The translations under genes were made by a program, and so were the position numbers. The notes under the pieces were generated by a model. That model worked only from the letters and a program-made list of their open reading frames with translations. It searched no databases and was not told the origin of the DNA. Positions 4,951 through 31,235 of a DNA stretch of 32,881 nucleotides are shown here, piece by piece (position 1 is the first letter of the stretch; each line of letters opens with the position of its first letter). This stretch comes from Octopus bimaculoides (lineage: Eukaryota): assembly GCF_001194135.2 (NCBI RefSeq), contig NC_068983.1, positions 135,887,901 to 135,920,781 on the forward strand, in the 5' to 3' direction.

Positions 4951-5028
4951 TTAGATTGGCTTGTACAGCAATGTAGTCACATACTTCTTACGAAACCGGT
5001 GGGTAGTGCTAAGAACCATTACACCATC
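4951..5028 (-). CDS. PRKAB1: AMPK beta last coding exon: DGVMVLSTTHRFRKKYVTTLLYKPI*
   Basis: TTCTATTTTCAG acceptor; TAA stop at 4953-4951; KKYVTTLLYKPI C-terminus typical of AMPK beta. Confidence 0.97.
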   Translation of the reverse strand, partial: DGVMVLSTTHRFRKKYVTTLLYKPI

Positions 5029-6441: not shown

Positions 6442-6510
6442 CTTAATTGATAAGGCGTACAAATGATTTAGCATAACATGGTTGGGCTCAGGTAAAAGTA
6501 TTGGTTCACA
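6442..6510 (-). CDS. PRKAB1: AMPK beta exon: CEPILLPEPNHVMLNHLYALSIK
   Basis: TTCTTTACAG acceptor, AAG|GTAAAA donor; 69 nt, phase 0 to 0; LPEPNHVMLNHLYALSIK is the hallmark beta-subunit motif. Confidence 0.97.
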
Positions 6511-6729: not shown

Positions 6730-7725
6730 TAACCCCTGCTAGCAACAAAGGGCTTCTCTCTCTCAGATTGAAAGGCAGATTGTTTGATGCCTGTGTGCGA
6801 ACAGCTATGCTGCATGGCAGTGAAACATGGGTTATGACAGTCGAAGACATGCATAGGCTTGAAAGAAATGACGCCAGTATGATTCACGGGATGTGCAATG
6901 TCAGTGTGAATGTTTGACAAAGTGTGAGCGTCTTGAGAGAAAAGCTAAGCATAAGAGGAATCAGATGTGGTGTGCAAAAGAGATGACTGCACTGGTATGG
7001 TCATGTGATGCATATGGATGAGGACAGCTGTGTAAAGAAGTGCCAATCTCTAACTGTGGAGGGAACCTGTGGTAGAGGTAGACTCAGGAAGACATGGGAT
7101 GAGGTGGTGAAGCATGATCTTCAAATTTTGAACCTCACAGAGGCAATGATTGATGACCAAGAACTTTGGCGATGTGCTGTGCATGAGAAGACCCATCAAG
7201 CCAAGTTCACCCATGCTGGTGGCACATAAAGAATATCTTTTGAATGTTGGGCTTCACAGAGTCAAAGTGGCTGAGTTCCTCTCGAGCATTTGGCCTCACA
7301 GAGGCAAAGTGGCTGAGTTCCTCTCGAGCATTGGGCCTCACAGAGGCGAAGTGGCTGAGTTCCTCTCAAGCATTCAGCCTCACAGAGGCAAAGTGGCCGA
7401 GTTCCTTTTGAGGGTTGGACCTCACAGAGGCAAGGTGGTTGAGTTCCTTTCGAGAATTTGGCTTCACAGAGGCAAAGTGGCTGAGTTCCTTTCGAGTGTT
7501 GGGCCTCACAGAGGTAATGATCAAGATCTTTGGCATTACGTCGTGCTTGAGAAGAAGACCCCTGAAGCTGAACAAAATCGCAGTCATGGTATATACAATG
7601 GCATCCAGCCATAGAAAACCATGCCAAATCAGACTGGAGTTTGGTGCAGCTTTCCAATGTGCCAGCCCAGTCAAACTGTCCAACTCATGCCAGCATGGAC
7701 ATTGGACGCCAAATGAGAATGATGA
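6730..7725 (+). mobile_element. 5'-truncated RTE LINE with internal tandem expansion
   Basis: PLLATKGFSLRLKGRLFDACVRTAMLHGSETW...GRGRLRKTWDEVVKHDL, then the tail ending near 7725. Confidence 0.9.
7247..7514 (+). repeat. 42-bp tandem array, about 6.4 copies
   Basis: Unit TTGGGCCTCACAGAGGCAAAGTGGCTGAGTTCCTCTCGAGCA; seen as the 14-aa repeat GPHRGKVAEFLSSI in ORF 7150..7614. Confidence 0.92.
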
Positions 7726-9288
7726 CGATGCATACCTTCTATTTGTTTGCATGTGATTCTGCATGCTTAAGGTGATTGTTAGTTCCATAGGCAACTTGGC
7801 TTGTCTATTGATAGAAATTTCAGAATATGAAGGATCCCAAGTGAATATAATAATATTTATTAAACTGCATGACAAGCCAGTTCATATCCTACCATCAGTC
7901 CTACAATGTGGCCATAGTTACAAGGCCTTCATTGAATTCAAATCAGGTTGTTTGTAATAAGTTGAACAGAGACTACTAGTTTGATTTTTTCCCAAATACA
8001 CCATATAAAGAAAATTACACATCAGGTGATGGCAACCTGGCATTCAAAATAAAGACTACACACCAAAAACATTTCAAATCTGAAGTTTTTGGTTGCAATG
8101 TACTTCAAAATAGCAGGACATGCAGCGTCTTTCTAATAATGTACCTCATGGCAAAAATTAACCTGATAAAATATAAGCTAAGCATGGTATACAAATTTCA
8201 GAATCTCTTCTTCAGAACCAATTGACCAGGGAAAATGTATATATTGCAACCATTTCTGTAAACCTCTAGAGTAGCAAATGCCAAGTCCTTTTTAGTGGTC
8301 TCACTCATGTTCAATTTTACATTTTTTTTTTCCAAGCTGACACAAAACTGGGATACACAAAAATTATAGAAGTGATATTCTACAGTCAGATGACTTTTCT
8401 GATCATGGCCCTTAATCATTTTCATGTAAAGTACTTTATTCCACAACATCATATGAACTGATGAACTGCCAGACCTTTTTCGTTTGTAAGAGACATATTA
8501 AAACTACCAGCTGGGTAGTGTCAATGTAAAGACACAGAGTGACAAACATACATACATACATATATATAGTAAATTGTACTATGGGTAGATTTTTGTATAT
8601 TGCTGTAGTAGAAACTGTAAAATTATTTATTAAATTTATTGCTTTGTTAAACAAAACAAATCTGTTATGATATAGTCAACTATCATACCTCATTTTGTTT
8701 CTATTATATTTACTTGTCAATGGAAACCAACACTAGTTTCCATCAATTCTAATGATTATACTTTGCATATCAAATGTCTTTCACCAAATTATCCTTTTCT
8801 TCAATCAGCAAAAACAGTTTTCTCCAAGACAACTATAGCATTTAATAGAAGCTTTTAACCTGACAGCATTTAATGTCATACAAATTCAAACATTAATATC
8901 TCAAAGAGTAGCTCTGCCTTGATACAGATAATACTACTCCAGCAATAACCATGTAACTCCATAATATTACTCCATTAATGACCACCTCTACAAACCCTAA
9001 ATATACCTTATTTTTGAATCATCAACTTGATAAAGAAAACTTTTGTTAAACATTTTCCATGCTAGATCCTCAGTTGCTCTTTCTCTTCGCCTTTTCTATG
9101 CTACGGTCAAGGAGCCTACAACTGAAAACTTATCTGAAATCAACAACCTCAAATCCAAATGCTTCATGCTCCTTGCTGTCTTTATTGGTTAATATCCCTA
9201 AATCAATAATTGATAAAAGCAATTCTAATGAGAGTTCATCACTTTCAGTCTTTTGAAACAACTCAAAGAAATAAACAGTGTTACTTAC

Positions 9289-9422
9289 ATGGGCAGGAGT
9301 ATCTTTATTCAGAATTACTTGCAGTAAATGAGGAGGAATGAAAGGTGGACCAGCTATTTTATCTGACCGCCGTGGAGGTATTTCTTGACCATAATCACCT
9401 GATGGGGAACCAGCAACATCAT
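9289..9422 (-). CDS. PRKAB1: AMPK beta exon: DVAGSPSGDYGQEIPPRRSDKIAGPPFIPPHLLQVILNKDTPAH
   Basis: AAATCAG acceptor at 9424-9423, CAT|GTAAGT donor; 134 nt, phase 1 to 0; PPxxPPHLLQVILNKDT motif. Confidence 0.95.
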
Positions 9423-10234: not shown

Positions 10235-10352
10235 TTTTTCTTTTATTACCAGAATTTTCACTGTCAATTGCCAGGGCTTCAAATACTTCAAAATCACTTT
10301 TGTTAACAACTACCACATTATTCAATGTCCCCATTGAGTTTGGAACTGTCGG
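10235..10352 (-). CDS. PRKAB1: AMPK beta exon, end of CBM: PTVPNSMGTLNNVVVVNKSDFEVFEALAIDSENSGNKRK(N)
   Basis: TTTACTTTCAG acceptor, A|GTAAGT donor; 118 nt, phase 0 to 1; GTxNN and DFEVFxAL motifs. Confidence 0.95.
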
Positions 10353-10978: not shown

Positions 10979-12900
10979 TCATTTAGAAACAAGTGGGAAT
11001 TGGCAACAAGAAGAGCGTCCAGCCACAGAAAAACTCTGCTTCAACATATTTACGCTTAACTTATGCAAGCAGAAAAATGTACACATTAAAATGATCACAA
11101 TCAGAAATTTGGAGAAGTAGTCACAAATGAGCAGATAAGTTTTGCTGTCGATTTCAAATAGATCTGTTCCTAATTTTTTCCATGGTGCACTGATAATGTC
11201 ATGAGGTATCAGTGGTTCTTTGTTGTTGACAGTTGCATATTCTTGGCATATTTGATAGAATCTGCACATTTCTTCGATGTCTTTGTTGATGTTTGTCCAA
11301 CAGACGCCTTCAAGAGCATGAAGTTTGGTCTCTTCTATCCTTTGATAAGAGGCATGGAGCTGTACTAGAATGTCATGTTGTAGAGGAGATATCAACAGTT
11401 GTGTCCCTTTGAAGAGGATTCCACCATCTACAGCCAATTCATCTCGAAAAGACCTGTATGTCTTTATATCATCTGGGACTTGTTTGATGTTGTCTGGCCA
11501 CCCATAGGTGATTGTTTCCATCAGTGTAGCCAAAGTAGAATCTCTGCTGGTGAACTCGCGCAGTTGGTAATGTTTGTTGATGGAAAAATTGACAAGGTCA
11601 AACTCAGATTGGTGGACTTCTCCAGCAGTCAATTCGATCCCATCTACTCTCAAGTCCAGGTCAATGTCTTCATTGTCACCACGGCTTGGGAGGCAAGAGA
11701 GGGTGTTAGCTAATGTCATGGTAAACCCTGGGCAGTACTTGATTTTGAAATATCCCTGAATTTTCTGGAGCGTCCTTTGTAGTCAGGGTGGTGCTCGAAG
11801 AAGGGGTTTTTCTGTGATTACCTCCAGGGGTTTGTGGTCTGTGAATACTTCAAATGGAAGTCCATAATGGTATGTGTGGAAACAGGCGATTCCAAATACC
11901 ACAGCCAGCATTTCACGATCAATATTTGGGTAGTTTGACTGAGTTGCTTTTGATGCAAATGCCACAGGTTTGCCATCTTGTATGACAAGCTGCTCCAAGT
12001 CCTTTCAAAGAGCTGTCTTCCTTGAATCCTGTTGGTTTCTGTGGGTCAAAGAACCTGAGGTTTGATTTCTGTGAAATGGTAAATTTAAGTTTTCCAAAGC
12101 AGTGTATGTGGTCTTCAGACAGCTCAAATGGTATATTTTTCTTGAAGAGGTCCCTTAATGGTTGTGCTTCCATGCTGAAGTTTGGAATGAATGTTGCAAA
12201 GCAATTCATCATTCCCAAGAATTTTTGCAGCTCTTCCTTGTTTTCTGGAATAGGCATGTTTTAAATGTCACAAACTTTTGCAGGGTCGGCATAAATCTCA
12301 GAGATTTAGAAATGTATTATTTCTAAATTCTTCAATGATTTCGTCCATTCTAGCTTGAAAGATATCTTGAGATACCTTTAGACCAAATGGCAATCTAGTC
12401 CGACAATAATTTCTAAATGGAAGGTTGTGAGCAGCTGGCTTTCTTCATCCAGATGAACTGACCAGTATCCTGCTTTTGCATCTAGTTTGCTTACAATGCC
12501 AGAACCAGCAAACTGAGGGTTCAACTTTTCCACCATTGGGATTTTGTGGGAGCATCTTTTCAGTGCTTGATTAAGTTTTTATGAGTCGATGCAGATGCAA
12601 AGTGATTCTTCTCTTTTTTACGGAATATACCATGCTTGAACACCAATCTGTTTGTTGGTTCACAGGCTTGATGACCCCCATTTCTTCTATCTTCTGGAGA
12701 TCAATCTTGAGATTTTTCAGATGAACTGAGCATTTCTGAGGTAGGTTAATGAAGGGTTCCGAGCCTGCTTTTATGTATAGTTGTGCAGGTTCTTTGAAGT
12801 TACCCAGGCTGTTGAAAAGATTTGGGTATGTTTCTTTCAGGCCTTCGATCCATGACATGATCACAATGTATTGTGATTAATTTCATTACCTTACATGTTG
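10979..12900 (-). mobile_element. Decayed Ty3/Gypsy LTR retrotransposon pol (RT-RNase H-integrase), frameshifted and internally deleted
   Basis: RT (EMGVIKPVNQQTDWCSSMV; RLPFGLKVSQDIFQ), tether (EELQKFLGMMN), RNase H (KPVAFASK..NYPNIDREMLAVVFG..FTDHKPL), integrase zinc-finger-like and core start (PWKKLGTDLFEIDSKTYLLICDYFSKF). Domain order RT-RH-IN is Gypsy-type; there are multiple stops and frameshifts. Confidence 0.92.
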
Positions 12901-14827: not shown

Positions 14828-15000
14828 NNNNNNNNNNNNNNNNNNNNNNNNNNNNNNNNNNNNNNNNNNNNNNNNNNNNNNNNNNNNNNNNNNNNNNNNN
14901 NNNNNNNNNNNNNNNNNNNNNNNNNNNNNNNNNNNNNNNNNNNNNNNNNNNNNNNNNNNNNNNNNNNNNNNNNNNNNNNNNNNNNNNNNNNNNNNNNNNN
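14828..15000. other. Assembly gap (173 N)
   Basis: N run. Confidence 1.
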
Positions 15001-15578: not shown

Positions 15579-15672
15579 CTCATTCTGGTCATGCAGCCAT
15601 TGACCATCCACATAGAATTTGTATTGGTGTTCTCCCTCAGGAAGATTCAAAATTGTGAAGAAATCACCATTA
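15579..15672 (-). CDS. PRKAB1: AMPK beta exon, CBM core: NGDFFTILNLPEGEHQYKFYVDGQWLHDQNE
   Basis: TTTTTATAG acceptor, GAG|GTAATG donor; 94 nt, phase 2 to 0; LPEGEHQYKFxVDGQW motif of AMPK beta. Confidence 0.97.
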
Positions 15673-19985: not shown

Positions 19986-21965
19986 GCACCTCTTATGTGT
20001 CTATTGCTTACACCAGGTACATCTTATGGAGTTTCTACCTATGCCTTTTCTACAGATCGAGCAGGGCCATCTACTTGAAGGGATTTATGGTTTGTCTGCC
20101 TTCCTGATCTTTGGTGGACCCCTACCCGGAATTCTTCAATGTACTTGTTGCCAAAGATGTATTATCTAATTTTGAAAACATCACTATAAATGTCAACAGA
20201 CAAAAAAGTGCACCAACTTTTTCAGTGACTTGGAAATATTCTTGCTGAGGAGGTAGGAGTTAAATAATCAATAAAAATATGCCTCAGAAACTGGTAAGTA
20301 TAGTTTGCATTTAAAGTAAAATATATTTCAGTAAAAAGAAATCAAATCTATACAATCTACCCAATTTGATCCCCTTTAAACAGAAAACAAAACTGACTTT
20401 TAAGAATAAAATGTGTAACAAAAATAGCAAAAAATAAATTTCATTCATATTATGCATTGTCAACTTCTTTCTCTGTTCAAATTGTAGAAACAAGACAACA
20501 AAGATTTTCAAGAAGTGATGTATTTAATATATGTAAATTATGTATGTAGCTCTTGTAATCTGAAGAATTATATTCAAGAAAAGACCAAGATTATTTCTGA
20601 ATAAGTTACAGAAAGCATTAATAAATAAAAAAAATAAATAAATGATAAAGAAGACACATAAGAGAAGGCTCATGAAAATTATTCTGGAAGGGGATTATTT
20701 TTATATATATGAAAGAAAAAACATTACAAGTAAATTAACATTAACTTTAATGGAATAAAAACGTCATCAAAGAACTGAAACTGTAACTTAAACAAGTTAG
20801 AACTTCAAAAGAAATGGAATACATCAGACAGAATTGTGTATCTTGAATTGTTCAGTTAATGTTACTCAATTAATCTCTAATGTAGATAAAGCCCTCGAGT
20901 TACAAATCCTTTTCCCATCTTGTTCCTCCCTCTCCCCTACAAATCTGGAGCATGTGAGCCACATCGAAAGAAAACAAAATTTGTTTATCTGACATATGTA
21001 CTATAAAAGAAAAGTAAATTGCTCGACTTTCTGAAATCAGGGATATATCTATCAATAGACAATTTTATTGACTTTGAGGAAAAGGGGAAAATATATGAAG
21101 GGAAAAAGCCACAACCAGGAAGCAAAACTTGGTCACACACAACTTAAAAGTATGCTTACCTTCTGCTGTATACAACTTACTAGCAGTTTAAAGTTTTGAA
21201 AGTTGTAGTTTAGGATGCAATTATACAAAACTCATTTTGTCATTTAGCAGTTTTTCCTTTTTTTTTTTTTTTTCATCTTTTTGGTAGGAGAAGTTAAAGA
21301 AAACCTATACTACCATGAAACTTAAAACTTAAGGAATTTGAATTTCAAGGTCATTATTTGTAGGTCAAGCTAATAATGATTAGAATTAGTAAAGGTGAAA
21401 TTTAGTTGGTTAGAAGCTTTAAGCAGTGACTTTTGAGCAGTCACCATTCATAGAAATTAAAATAAAAGTTTTAAACATTAAGCTAAAAGCATTTTCTTAA
21501 AAGCAATTTATCCATGCAACTCAGATTTAGTTGGAAAGCAAGCCAATCTGCACATTGTGTGCATTTATATTTAATACTTGCTGATTATAATTGAATTTAT
21601 ATAAGTATATCTATGTTCATTTGTTTTTACAGCCGTTTTTTCTATGCTAGCATAGATTAGATAAATAGATATTGTTGAAGCATTGTTTTTTTTTCTTTTT
21701 TACAGCCAGATGCTCTTCCTGCTACTACCTCTTCAAAAACACAGAGCTAATGAGTGACTTGTTGACAAAGAAATGGCAACCATAGCACAATGTTTGTGAA
21801 ATTCATTTCATAGTCACTGAGTTGCAGTTAGTATTCTCCATTGTGAGATTATATATTAATTCCAGGTAATATGATGATGTAAAATAATAGGTACACATCA
21901 TAGTGGTCAAATCAGTTTCATGCTTAAACTCAAACACTTTAAAAGCAACTTAAAATATCAGGATG

Positions 21966-23720: not shown

Positions 23721-24202
23721 ATATTGTGGATACTGAAAAATTCAATGTCATGCTGTAGTTTTGTCCCTGACAGGGAAACTAGGAATTTCGTAATGCCTAT
23801 AATAAAACACTACTCTACAAATGTATTGAGTACTCTGTCTTCATGGATGCAGTACCTAGTACAGTGTGTGTATAATAGTTTTGAGAATGTACAAAAGTCT
23901 AATTCATTTTGATAGCAATTACTAAGCTAACACTATAGTAGGATCAGTTTCATATAGATGCAAACAAGAGTGATGAAAGTTACCACAATGTTAAAGCAAT
24001 GGAAAAACAGATTTATTAATTTCTTTTATTCCATTTCGGGATTAAGATTTAATAAAGCCAAACTATTGAATAAATCTGTTTTTTCAATTTCTTCACTATT
24101 GTAGCCAAGTTCATTTGTTTCTTTTTTTACCTTTGTTACTACAAAATCTTACCAGTTTTAGCAGTTAGGGAGAGAGATTTTTTAAAAAATTGTTAAATTT
24201 AC

Positions 24203-24250
24203 CCATCAGAATCGTGTCTCTGTCTGCTTCTGTCTGTTAGTCGTACAGTG
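24203..24250 (-). CDS. Candidate 48-nt cassette exon of AMPK beta: (S)TVRLTDRSRQRHDSD(G)
   Basis: Long T-rich tract ending TTTGTTTCTTCAG, donor GG|GTAAAT; phase 2 to 2 matching the flanking exons; no stop; about 50% GC in an AT-rich intron. No transcript evidence available. Confidence 0.6.
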
Positions 24251-25931
24251 CTGAAGAAACAAAATAGATGTAACAATAATACCTAATACAACAAACAAAA
24301 ATAGAGAACCAACTTATAAAAAAAAAAATGATAAAAAAAACTGAGGCACCTTCAGAGTTAATAAGCTGAATTGTTCTGATTGGAATTTTCTAACAACTAT
24401 TTACGATAAGAAGAATAAATTTTATTTCTAATAAGAAGTCACAAGTTGGTGAGATATACAGCAGAAACTAACATTAAGGCAACTTGCCTGAGGAAGACAT
24501 GCTCAAACACATACCTTATTCACAACCCAATTTTGTATTGACATATACCTTCACTAGCCCCTCTGCTCTATTTCAATGAATATCCTAAATCCTAATATAT
24601 TCATTACCCTACTCATTTCTGTAAAAACCAGTGAATTCAATCACCATTAAGCTAGCAGTTCTTTACTCCATCTCCAAACTAGCATTCTCCTGTCTTTCAA
24701 TACTTTTTTTTCTTTTAACATTGATTGCATACTAACCTCAATTAAATCCACTTTATGTTGTCCCCTCTCCTGCTACAATAGTATACAAATTTGAGAATCC
24801 TCTGTATGAAATCTTAAAAAAACTGCACTGAATCCAAGCAAATATATTTCTCCATCCCCTACATTTAAAAATGAGTCCATAACTTATTGGATTTTGGGAA
24901 TACTTCTTATACTTGTGACAATGTTTCTAATAAATTGCACTGTTTCAAAGAATCTTTGGGAGGAGAAAAAAATATCAAGAATTTGTGAGGTTTTAGTAAA
25001 ATAAAATTCTTTCTCATTAAGTTGGTGTTTGAAACAAAACGGAAAGGTTCTTAAGATGGAAGGTTTTAATTTCAATATAAACACTTTAAAAGTAAAAGTT
25101 TTGTATTATAAAGTAGAGATAGGCTGATATCGAAAGAGTTAAAGACATATATCTAAAGCAAATCAGTATGTCTAAGTTTGTTTCTCTTCTTCAAGGCAAG
25201 ATTTCAACTCAGCATTGCAAACTTGTTCATTCTACACTGTTCAGACTACTTACAGCTTTAACTATTTAAAATACCTATTTAAAGTGAGATAGAATTGGTT
25301 ATGAAACAGTTCAGCATACAAAACTCTACTACTACAGCCTTTTGTGATTATCTTCTTCCAGCTTTGTTGCACAGTGGTAGCTGAGCATAACACTGAAGGA
25401 ATATCTTACAGTCCACATGCAGTATATTCCAACTTTTAAATAAGTAGACTGAAATGATTCCTCACTGTCTGCTCCAAGACCACATGTGGAATTGTAAGCA
25501 ATATTGTGAACTAACAAAACAAACTTTTACATTTTTGCAGCTGATTGCAGCAGTAAATTTGTTTCTATGTAATACTTGCTACAGCTAACTGAATTTGACT
25601 TTTGAGAGTTAAAAGCCTTTGTTACAGGCACAACACAGTAGCAAATGATGAACCATCAACAACTTGGTTGGTTACTCTGTACTTTCATTTGGCCAACTAG
25701 TGTCAGAAGACCCATAACTTGTTAGAACTGCCTATTCTCTTTCAACTAATAAAGAAATATGTGAAAGGGGATCCAAAATAAATTCTTAAAGTGAACCTCA
25801 TTTCCCAATCTCTGATTTACATGAAATCTATAGTAACAAAAGAGACTCAGTAAAAGAAATATTCCATCAGTTTTGTCTTTTTGGTAAGTGCGTGTATGTT
25901 GAAATAAGTTTTTCAAAAACTAGGTACTTAC

Positions 25932-26119
25932 CTTTTAGCTAAGGGTATTGTATTTTTCCAATTGTTGAAGCTCCCTGACAAGCAGACTTCTTTTGCTGCT
26001 CCCTCCCATCTGAAAACTGTTGGCAAACATTTTTCCACCAGTGTTGGACTATGTGTAACTGTATTTGACCGTGGACGCTGATATGTATCAAGTGGCAGAT
26101 CTCGACTAGGTCTTGATGT
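25932..26119 (-). CDS. PRKAB1: AMPK beta subunit, first coding exon found (N-terminal linker + start of CBM): TSRPSRDLPLDTYQRPRSNTVTHSPTLVEKCLPTVFRWEGAAKEVCLSGSFNNWKNTIPLAK(S)
   Basis: Poly-T tract + TAG acceptor at 26121-26120; AG|GTAAGT donor at 25931; 188 nt, phase 0 to 2. PTVFRW..KEV.LSGSFNNW is the AMPK beta CBM signature. The symbol denotes the PRKAB1/2 co-orthologue. Confidence 0.96.
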
Positions 26120-26144: not shown

Positions 26145-26154
26145 NNNNNNNNNN
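26145..26154. other. Assembly gap (10 N) abutting the poly-T acceptor tract of the 26119 exon
   Basis: N run next to A(26124-26144). Confidence 1.
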
Positions 26155-30812: not shown

Positions 30813-31235
30813 NNNNNNNNNNNNNNNNNNNNNNNNNNNNNNNNNNNNNNNNNNNNNNNNNNNNNNNNNNNNNNNNNNNNNNNNNNNNNNNNNNNNNNNN
30901 NNNNNNNNNNNNNNNNNNNNNNNNNNNNNNNNNNNNNNNNNNNNNNNNNNNNNNNNNNNNNNNNNNNNNNNNNNNNNNNNNNNNNNNNNNNNNNNNNNNN
31001 NNNNNNNNNNNNNNNNNNNNNNNNNNNNNNNNNNNNNNNNNNNNNNNNNNNNNNNNNNNNNNNNNNNNNNNNNNNNNNNNNNNNNNNNNNNNNNNNNNNN
31101 NNNNNNNNNNNNNNNNNNNNNNNNNNNNNNNNNNNNNNNNNNNNNNNNNNNNNNNNNNNNNNNNNNNNNNNNNNNNNNNNNNNNNNNNNNNNNNNNNNNN
31201 NNNNNNNNNNNNNNNNNNNNNNNNNNNNNNNNNNG
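30813..31235. other. Assembly gap (423 N)
   Basis: N run; all six long ORFs spanning it are artefacts. Confidence 1.

Follow-up and report, generated by a model that had tools for sequence, protein, structure and literature searches.

The window analysed here, a stretch of 32,881 nt from Octopus bimaculoides, carries the coding exons of an AMPK beta-subunit gene (PRKAB) on its - strand. A tblastn search with a human PRKAB1 sequence, used solely as a probe, located six PRKAB coding exons on this strand, and a refined seven-exon model (26119..25932 to 5028..4951) is identical, residue for residue from position 41, to residues 41–282 of XP_014774817.1, the O. bimaculoides AMPK beta-2 isoform X1. 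The upstream constitutive exon (25932..26119, -) encodes TSRPS...FNNWKNTIPLAK and ends in AG, the first two bases of the Ser108-equivalent codon, at an AG/gtaagt donor. It is followed by a 48-nt cassette exon (24203..24250, -) bounded by phase-2 introns on both sides, and by a downstream constitutive exon (15579..15672, -) whose first base, T, ends a Ser codon when the cassette is skipped or a Gly codon when it is included, and which continues with NGDFFTILNLPEGEHQYKFYVDGQWLHDQNE. The remaining - strand exons are 10235..10352 (PTVPNSMGTLNN...NSGNKRK), covering the end of the CBM and the next helix; 9289..9422, with alternative acceptors at 9422 and 9398; 6442..6510 (CEPILLPEPNHVMLNHLYALSIK), within the alpha/gamma-binding C-terminal domain; and the last coding exon, 4951..5028 (DGVMVLSTTHRFRKKYVTTLLYKPI plus the stop codon). 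Dropping the cassette, using the 9398 acceptor, or doing both reproduced isoforms X2, X3 and X4 exactly, with the cassette present in X1 and X2 (XP_014774818.1) and skipped in X3 and X4. The same gene in O. sinensis and O. vulgaris shows three residue differences from the window model, one of the three in the cassette.

Beta subunits characteristically begin with Met-Gly, the glycine being the myristoylation site. The protein P0001 starts with MGNTTSGK, and the exon encoding this sequence lies outside the window, where no - strand frame gave a match to it. Pfam domains AMPK1_CBM (PF16561) and AMPKBI (PF04739) were found on P0001 and on all homologue matches, and the AMPKBI domain, ending in ...YVTTLLYKPI, is encoded by window exons 6510..6442 and 5028..4951. 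A phmmer search of PDB sequences matched the octopus protein to human beta-2 chain 6b2e_B with an E value of 1e-79, and the CBM is alignable to chains 1z0m, 2f15 and 6b2e. In coleoid cephalopods it is a single AMPK beta-subunit gene that carries the cassette.

A second splicing event occurs in the same gene, where two acceptors 24 nt apart (9398..9422, -; ...aaatcag/ATGATG...CCATCAG/GTGATT) offer a choice in the post-CBM linker. Use of the 9398 acceptor, as in X2 and X4, changes KRK-NDVAGSPSG-DYGQE to KRK-S-DYGQE and removes 8 residues. Open reading frames of 246 and 112 aa (10979..12257, -) lie in sense orientation in the intron between exons 15579 and 10352; by eye they look like retrotransposon pol fragments, with a Ty3/gypsy-like RT/RNase H connection and an integrase zinc-finger region. 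The intron between exons 9289 and 6510 contains a 42-nt tandem repeat (7247..7514; 6.4 copies, 85% match), which generates spurious long open reading frames on both strands (7150..7875). Three runs of N mark assembly gaps (14828..15000, 26145..26154 and 30813..31234), all clear of the cassette and its intron; the second, of 10 N, sits 26 nt upstream of exon 26119, within its T-rich acceptor region.

On the - strand the cassette (24250..24203) reads CACTGTACGACTAACAGACAGAAGCAGACAGAGACACGATTCTGATGG, a purine-rich sequence with CAGA motifs that encodes (S)TVRLTDRSRQRHDSD(G). Directly 5′ of it the strand reads ...ctattttgtttcttcag (a second excerpt of the same flank is ...catctattttgtttcttcag), with more T runs 60–85 nt upstream. 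The 3′ splice region (24251..24300, -) consists of a polypyrimidine tract and acceptor, ...ttgtattaggtattattgttacatctattttgtttcttcag, that are nearly invariant between Octopus and Argonauta, and the 5′ splice site (24194..24202, -), GG/gtaaattta, is a moderate donor with 4 of 7 scored consensus positions that is likewise kept in Argonauta. The upstream exon ends in ...CCC TTA GCT AAA AG/gtaagt at 25932 and the downstream exon begins at 15672 with tttttatag/T AAT GGT GAT TTC TTC; with AG on one side and T on the other, both introns are therefore in phase 2. Skipping joins AG to T, giving Ser and then NGDFF. Inclusion gives Ser from AG+C, then TVRLTDRSRQRHDSD, Gly from GG+T and NGDFF, so that the product reads PLAKS-TVRLTDRSRQRHDSDG-NGDFF without a stop codon. 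The first-pass annotation had described a 48-nt island with an acceptor tract, a GT donor, matching phases of 2 and no stops, joined to its neighbours at 25932/24250 and 24203/15672. Read on the - strand, this island is exact to the base and both junction coordinates are correct; the cassette has a canonical AG acceptor with a polypyrimidine tract and a GT donor, keeps the frame and contains no stop, and its description as a frame-preserving cassette exon of AMPK beta is borne out by RefSeq isoforms and cDNA contigs.

The host intron is 10,259 nt long and contains 600 open, frame-preserving AG...GT islands of 9–300 nt, so that being open and in frame is not in itself significant. By a crude score, 3 of these islands, the cassette included, have a polypyrimidine tract and donor at least equal to those of the cassette, and random introns drawn from an order-1 Markov model yielded 0.58 ± 0.82 such islands. 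The case for an exon from sequence alone is suggestive, not decisive, and the decision rests on evidence from outside the sequence, namely annotation, cDNA contigs and conservation between species. We also considered membership of the neural microexon class that depends on Srrm234/eMIC. That programme is marked by a UGC motif shortly before the acceptor; the 40 nt that precede the cassette acceptor (ttgtattaggtattattgttacatctattttgtttcttcag) contain no TGC, and at 48 nt the cassette exceeds the usual microexon length of up to 27 nt and fits only the loosest definition (up to 51 nt). On its length and the missing UGC, this class was ruled out.

Annotation and transcripts both contain the exon. 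The 16-aa insert also appears in annotated proteins of O. sinensis (XP_029633384.1), O. vulgaris (CAI9720200.1) and Argonauta hians (GAB1599734.1), and models that skip it exist in O. sinensis (X3 and X4) and O. vulgaris (a 266-aa model). Among Logan RNA-seq assemblies, intron-less contigs of 1.2–1.9 kb encode a full-length beta subunit with the 48-nt insert at identical junctions (...AAAAG/C...GG/CAATGG); they come from a cuttlefish, a close relative of that cuttlefish and a second decapodiform. Apart from the insert, the cuttlefish protein, P0002, matches PRKAB of Acanthosepion pharaonis at 100% identity, and P0129 (75 contigs listed) and P0130 (16 contigs) carry the insert TVRQTDRNRQKQESEG. 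P0004 (28–31 contigs listed) carries NVRQTDRNKQRLEEEG, and its identities of 87% to the cuttlefish protein and 80% to Octopus identify its source as the second decapodiform. In the cuttlefish relative, a skipping contig (L014) and an including contig (L015) agree at 99.9–100% identity to either side of a cleanly bounded 48-nt block, and inclusion prevails there, with 75 entries listed against 2. The octopus evidence for inclusion and skipping consists of RefSeq models, which are computational, and the read-based contigs come from decapodiforms. A protein search with an 83-aa CBM segment for fragmentary octopus transcripts returned 4 candidates, none useful, the query being short and presumably below a word-index limit.

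From these data it is close to certain that the cassette is real and alternatively spliced. The alternative splicing proposed in the first-pass annotation is seen in X1/X2 versus X3/X4 and in cuttlefish-lineage cDNA contigs with and without the exon, and a search of cephalopod transcriptomes, as it had suggested, and of annotation recovered the 48-nt insert in decapodiform contigs and the 16-aa insert in three octopodiform annotations. Novelty, which it had left unconfirmed, does not hold for the sequence feature, which was already in RefSeq as XP_014774817.1 and in the annotation of O. sinensis, O. vulgaris and Argonauta hians. The RefSeq cephalopod beta-2 isoforms contain the identical exon but are database models, for which we found no published description or functional study; a literature search on PRKAB microexons, cephalopod microexons and AMPK-beta splicing with Ser108 likewise returned no paper on the cassette. 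Its existence is already known to annotation, and its biology is lineage-specific.

We compared the intron across species. The entire intron aligns with that of O. sinensis at ~90% identity, which makes this comparison uninformative about the cassette. Against Argonauta hians, only the two flanking exons and one collinear island align across the 10.3-kb intron; the island (24300..24194; 107 nt, 88.8% identity, E 5e-35) is conserved to the same level as the flanking exons, and two further short matches are out of order and repeat-like. Between Octopus and Argonauta the sequence is nearly invariant over the cassette, ~45 nt before its acceptor and ~20 nt beyond its donor, and is unalignable further out. 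Exon length (48 nt) and reading frame are kept in all five species, and the expected conservation of the segment and its splice sites in relatives was found in O. sinensis, Argonauta, the cuttlefish and the second decapodiform.

Synonymous change within the exon is strongly depressed. Between O. bimaculoides and the cuttlefish, the cassette has changed at ~2 of 11 synonymous sites and the adjoining CBM exons at ~40 of 47 (Fisher p = 4e-5); the corresponding values against the second decapodiform are ~5 of 11 and ~45 of 47 (p = 3e-4), in comparisons that use cDNA loci L001 and L002 and a cassette sample of 17 codons. Low synonymous divergence is a common signature of regulated alternative exons. 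The peptide itself evolves about twice as fast as its surroundings (dN 0.17–0.35 in the cassette versus 0.08–0.14 in the surrounding CBM), and such a combination is what alternative exons usually show. An RNA fold as the cause of the synonymous constraint was not supported, as the 131-nt region folds no better than shuffled sequences (z = 0.52). The cassette is 62–71% purine and built around CAGA units, with CAG ACA GAC AGA encoding Q-T-D-R and CAGACAGACAGA as the cuttlefish counterpart of this core; it may have originated from a tetranucleotide repeat, and the purine-rich core may act as a splicing enhancer that aids the merely moderate donor. Given the strong synonymous constraint and the CAGA- and purine-rich composition, some of what is conserved could be there for splicing and not for the protein. 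The only cassette difference within Octopus is the codon at 24226..24228 (-), AGC (Ser) in O. bimaculoides and GGC (Gly) in O. sinensis and O. vulgaris; an A/G change is also of the type produced by A-to-I recoding in coleoids.

The exon inserts its residues at a well-known regulatory position. Ser108 and the residues after it form one wall of the ADaM pocket, which is the site of synthetic AMPK activators and whose natural regulation is still debated. In mammals the ADaM site is a cleft between the CBM and the kinase N-lobe, and autophosphorylated Ser108 stabilises it through two conserved N-lobe lysines (PMC4995730). In the alignment with 6b2e_B the 16-residue insert appears as a gap exactly between S108 and H109 of human beta-2. 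As first proposed, this puts it in the turn of the CBM hairpin, immediately behind the Ser108 equivalent. The Ser108-equivalent column (S103 of P0001) is invariant in a 61-sequence metazoan alignment. In an AlphaFold2 model built on this alignment, the CBM strands have pLDDT values of ~87–93, whereas values under 50 mark residues 106–119, most of the insert (104–119), where a short helix at 107–112 is the most that is predicted. In the model, the strand that closes with IPL precedes the insert and the strand DFFTILNL follows it. From this low-confidence loop between confident strands, it appears that the insert is a loop extension of the hairpin turn that would leave the CBM fold intact, as judged from a monomer model that carries no information on the alpha-subunit interface.

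The five cassette peptides could be aligned: TVRLTDRSRQRHDSDG in O. bimaculoides, TVRLTDRGRQRHDSDG in O. sinensis and O. vulgaris, TVRLTDRSRQKQESDG in Argonauta hians, TVRQTDRNRQKQESEG in the cuttlefish and NVRQTDRNKQRLEEEG in the second decapodiform. Their consensus is [TN]-V-R-[LQ]-T-D-R-x-[RK]-Q-[RK]-x-[DE]-[SE]-[DE]-G, in which V2, R3, T5, D6, R7, Q10 and G16 are invariant, positions 9 and 11 are basic, and positions 13 and 15 are acidic. Position 14 is Ser in 4 of the 5 sequences and Glu in the other. The conserved pattern basic-x-basic-x-x-[S/E]-acidic-G fits a phosphosite or a fixed negative charge, and the Ser/Glu alternation in its acidic setting lends either possibility modest support.

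Based on these observations, we propose that the insert would form a flexible, highly charged surface loop on an unchanged CBM fold. Inclusion would replace the NGD that follows Ser108 with TVR, and the 16-residue loop would part Ser108 from the strand that lines the ADaM pocket in mammals. The altered local sequence and geometry could tune the ease with which Ser108 is phosphorylated and the tightness with which the CBM docks on the kinase N-lobe, and either change might shift the basal or ligand-dependent allosteric state. The acidic tail, [DE]-[SE]-[DE], may place fixed or phospho-switchable negative charge near the N-lobe lysines to which phospho-Ser108 usually binds; the phospho-Ser itself may interact with the first half of the insert, which is basic. 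Splicing chooses between long and short beta forms, which, given the TVR replacement and the loop separation, are expected to differ in Ser108 phosphorylation, in CBM docking or in both. Taken as a combined statement, that a real, conserved alternative cassette tunes the Ser108/ADaM state is a reading we hold to be somewhat probable. The tuning mechanism in its own right is put forward tentatively, as an idea somewhat less likely than not.

The transcript counts bear on a different account, in which coleoids include the exon practically always, transcripts that lack it reflect a low level of splicing noise, and the insert is a lineage-specific loop that involves no isoform switch. Listed contigs of the cuttlefish lineage number 75, 16 and 1 for inclusion versus 2, 1 and 1, plus one genome annotation, for skipping; the second decapodiform shows the inclusion form only (28–31 contigs), and a moderate donor is expected to be skipped occasionally. 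Inclusion probably predominates, at any rate in decapodiforms as represented by RNA-seq assemblies, but contig counts are not expression measures and depend on the tissues that were sequenced. Skipping isoforms X3 and X4 are modelled in both O. bimaculoides and O. sinensis, a 266-aa skipping model exists in O. vulgaris, and it is regulated alternative exons that more typically show the low synonymous divergence and conserved neighbouring intron sequence seen here. We consider a constitutive loop rather unlikely, but it is the main rival reading.

A further account holds that the cassette chiefly adds an RxRxxS site of the Akt/S6K/RSK type, coupling ADaM or glycogen sensing to growth-factor signalling. 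The first-pass annotation had drawn attention to this consensus, and the motif is indeed present in Octopus: the peptide that spans the candidate phospho-Ser is STVRLTDRSRQRHDSDGNGDFF, and the strict form, RQRHDS, occurs in the three Octopus species (bimaculoides, sinensis and vulgaris) and in no other species compared. Basic residues at -5 and -3 are kept in 5 of 5 species, and one species has Glu in place of Ser, a replacement often seen at real phosphosites. Outside Octopus the proposed consensus does not stand, since the -3 Arg is Lys in Argonauta and the cuttlefish (RQKQES), and the second decapodiform (KQRLEE) has Lys for the -5 Arg and lacks the Ser. At +1 every species compared has Asp or Glu, whereas the optimum for Akt is a bulky hydrophobic residue, and a 16-mer rich in Arg and Lys readily yields such motifs by chance. 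On the sequences compared, the conserved pattern would thus give no support to a specific Akt/S6K/RSK link, and we regard this account as very unlikely. That the exon is a chance pseudo-exon or annotation artefact of no biological use, as its 600 competitor islands and the computational nature of the RefSeq X-isoforms might suggest, is extremely unlikely and effectively refuted by exon-containing spliced cDNA contigs, which stem from dozens of separate RNA-seq runs and represent at least two further species, the L014/L015 pair included, by its status as the only collinear conserved island of the intron in Argonauta, and by the retention of its 48-nt length and reading frame in five species.

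The proposed tuning of the Ser108/ADaM state can be set against known CBM loops. The mammalian beta-1/beta-2 CBM hairpin (PDB 4CFE, 4RER and 6B2E) is the same domain, with the same Ser and the same flanks (FNNW..IPLxKS / xxDFxxIL.LPEGEHQYKF), but mammalian subunits have no residues between S108 and H109, where the cephalopod long form has 16, charged. A second comparison is the Thr101 loop insertion of the mammalian beta-2 CBM relative to beta-1, which we take to be the feature represented by 4Y0G, 4YEE and 4YEF among the PDB matches. It is a precedent in which a small change of CBM loop length alters carbohydrate affinity. Thr101 is a single residue in another loop, on the sugar-binding side, and is fixed between paralogues, whereas the cephalopod insert is chosen by splicing.

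A parallel case occurs in bivalves. Venerid PRKAB carries a 12-aa cassette, DDIQDRDHKTTV in Ruditapes and Mercenaria and NDSKDRDHKGGD in another bivalve transcript; the cassette is also present in RNA-seq contigs P0148 and P0150. In Ruditapes the homologous phase-2 intron contains it as an exon of its own, 36 nt long (L021 8218..8253), that inserts charged residues at the same peptide bond after the Ser. At the nucleotide level this exon (CGATGATATACAGGACCGTGATCATAAAACAACTGT) does not evidently resemble its cephalopod counterpart, and a D-R core is all that the peptides have in common; with this and the difference in length, homology of the two cassettes cannot be established. The same peptide bond receives 5- and 6-aa inserts in arthropod-like JGI/Logan sequences (P0068/P0117 and P0036) and an unrelated predicted 14-aa insert in one axolotl Gnomon model (XP_069497433.1), a putative vertebrate case to set beside the first-pass annotation's remark that it knew of no such exon in vertebrate PRKAB genes. 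From inserts at this one bond in cephalopods, bivalves, arthropod-like sequences and the axolotl model, it seems that small exons have repeatedly entered the gene through the conserved phase-2 intron.

A broader conjecture is that in molluscs (coleoids and possibly, by way of a homologous or convergent exon, venerid bivalves) splicing at the Ser108 intron acts as a natural isoform switch at the ADaM interface, with the phospho-switchable or acidic loop of the long form replacing or gating phospho-Ser108. We consider this quite unlikely; if true, the AMPK allosteric set-point would be picked by tissue, for example in neurons, as a natural counterpart of synthetic ADaM-site pharmacology. To judge by the sequences, the cassette yields a splice isoform of the ADaM hairpin that is conserved in the coleoid lineages compared and known to annotation, with a mechanism that we infer. 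A 16-residue spliced loop at the Ser108/His109 bond, kept in both octopodiforms and decapodiforms, amounts to a natural experiment on how far the interface can be remodelled and could reveal the way in which contact between CBM and kinase is adjusted in vivo. The exon is no first-order surprise, and its present value to AMPK structural biology is that of a solid, testable experimental lead, cheaply pursued by expressing both isoforms, rather than a discovery.

Bivalves differ from the octopus window in a further respect, as they carry tandem duplicate copies of the next two exons; tblastn found no duplicate of the post-cassette exons in the octopus window. In Ruditapes philippinarum (L021 13184..13447 and 21526..21849), both the post-cassette exon (HGDFYTIINLPEGDHQYKFSVDG... 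and NGDFFTIVDLPEGEHQYKFYVDG...) and the exon after it are duplicated, and RefSeq isoforms use one copy or the other, a pattern suggestive of mutually exclusive splicing. In Tegillarca granosa, model P0005 contains both duplicate copies in series, which is probably an annotation error.
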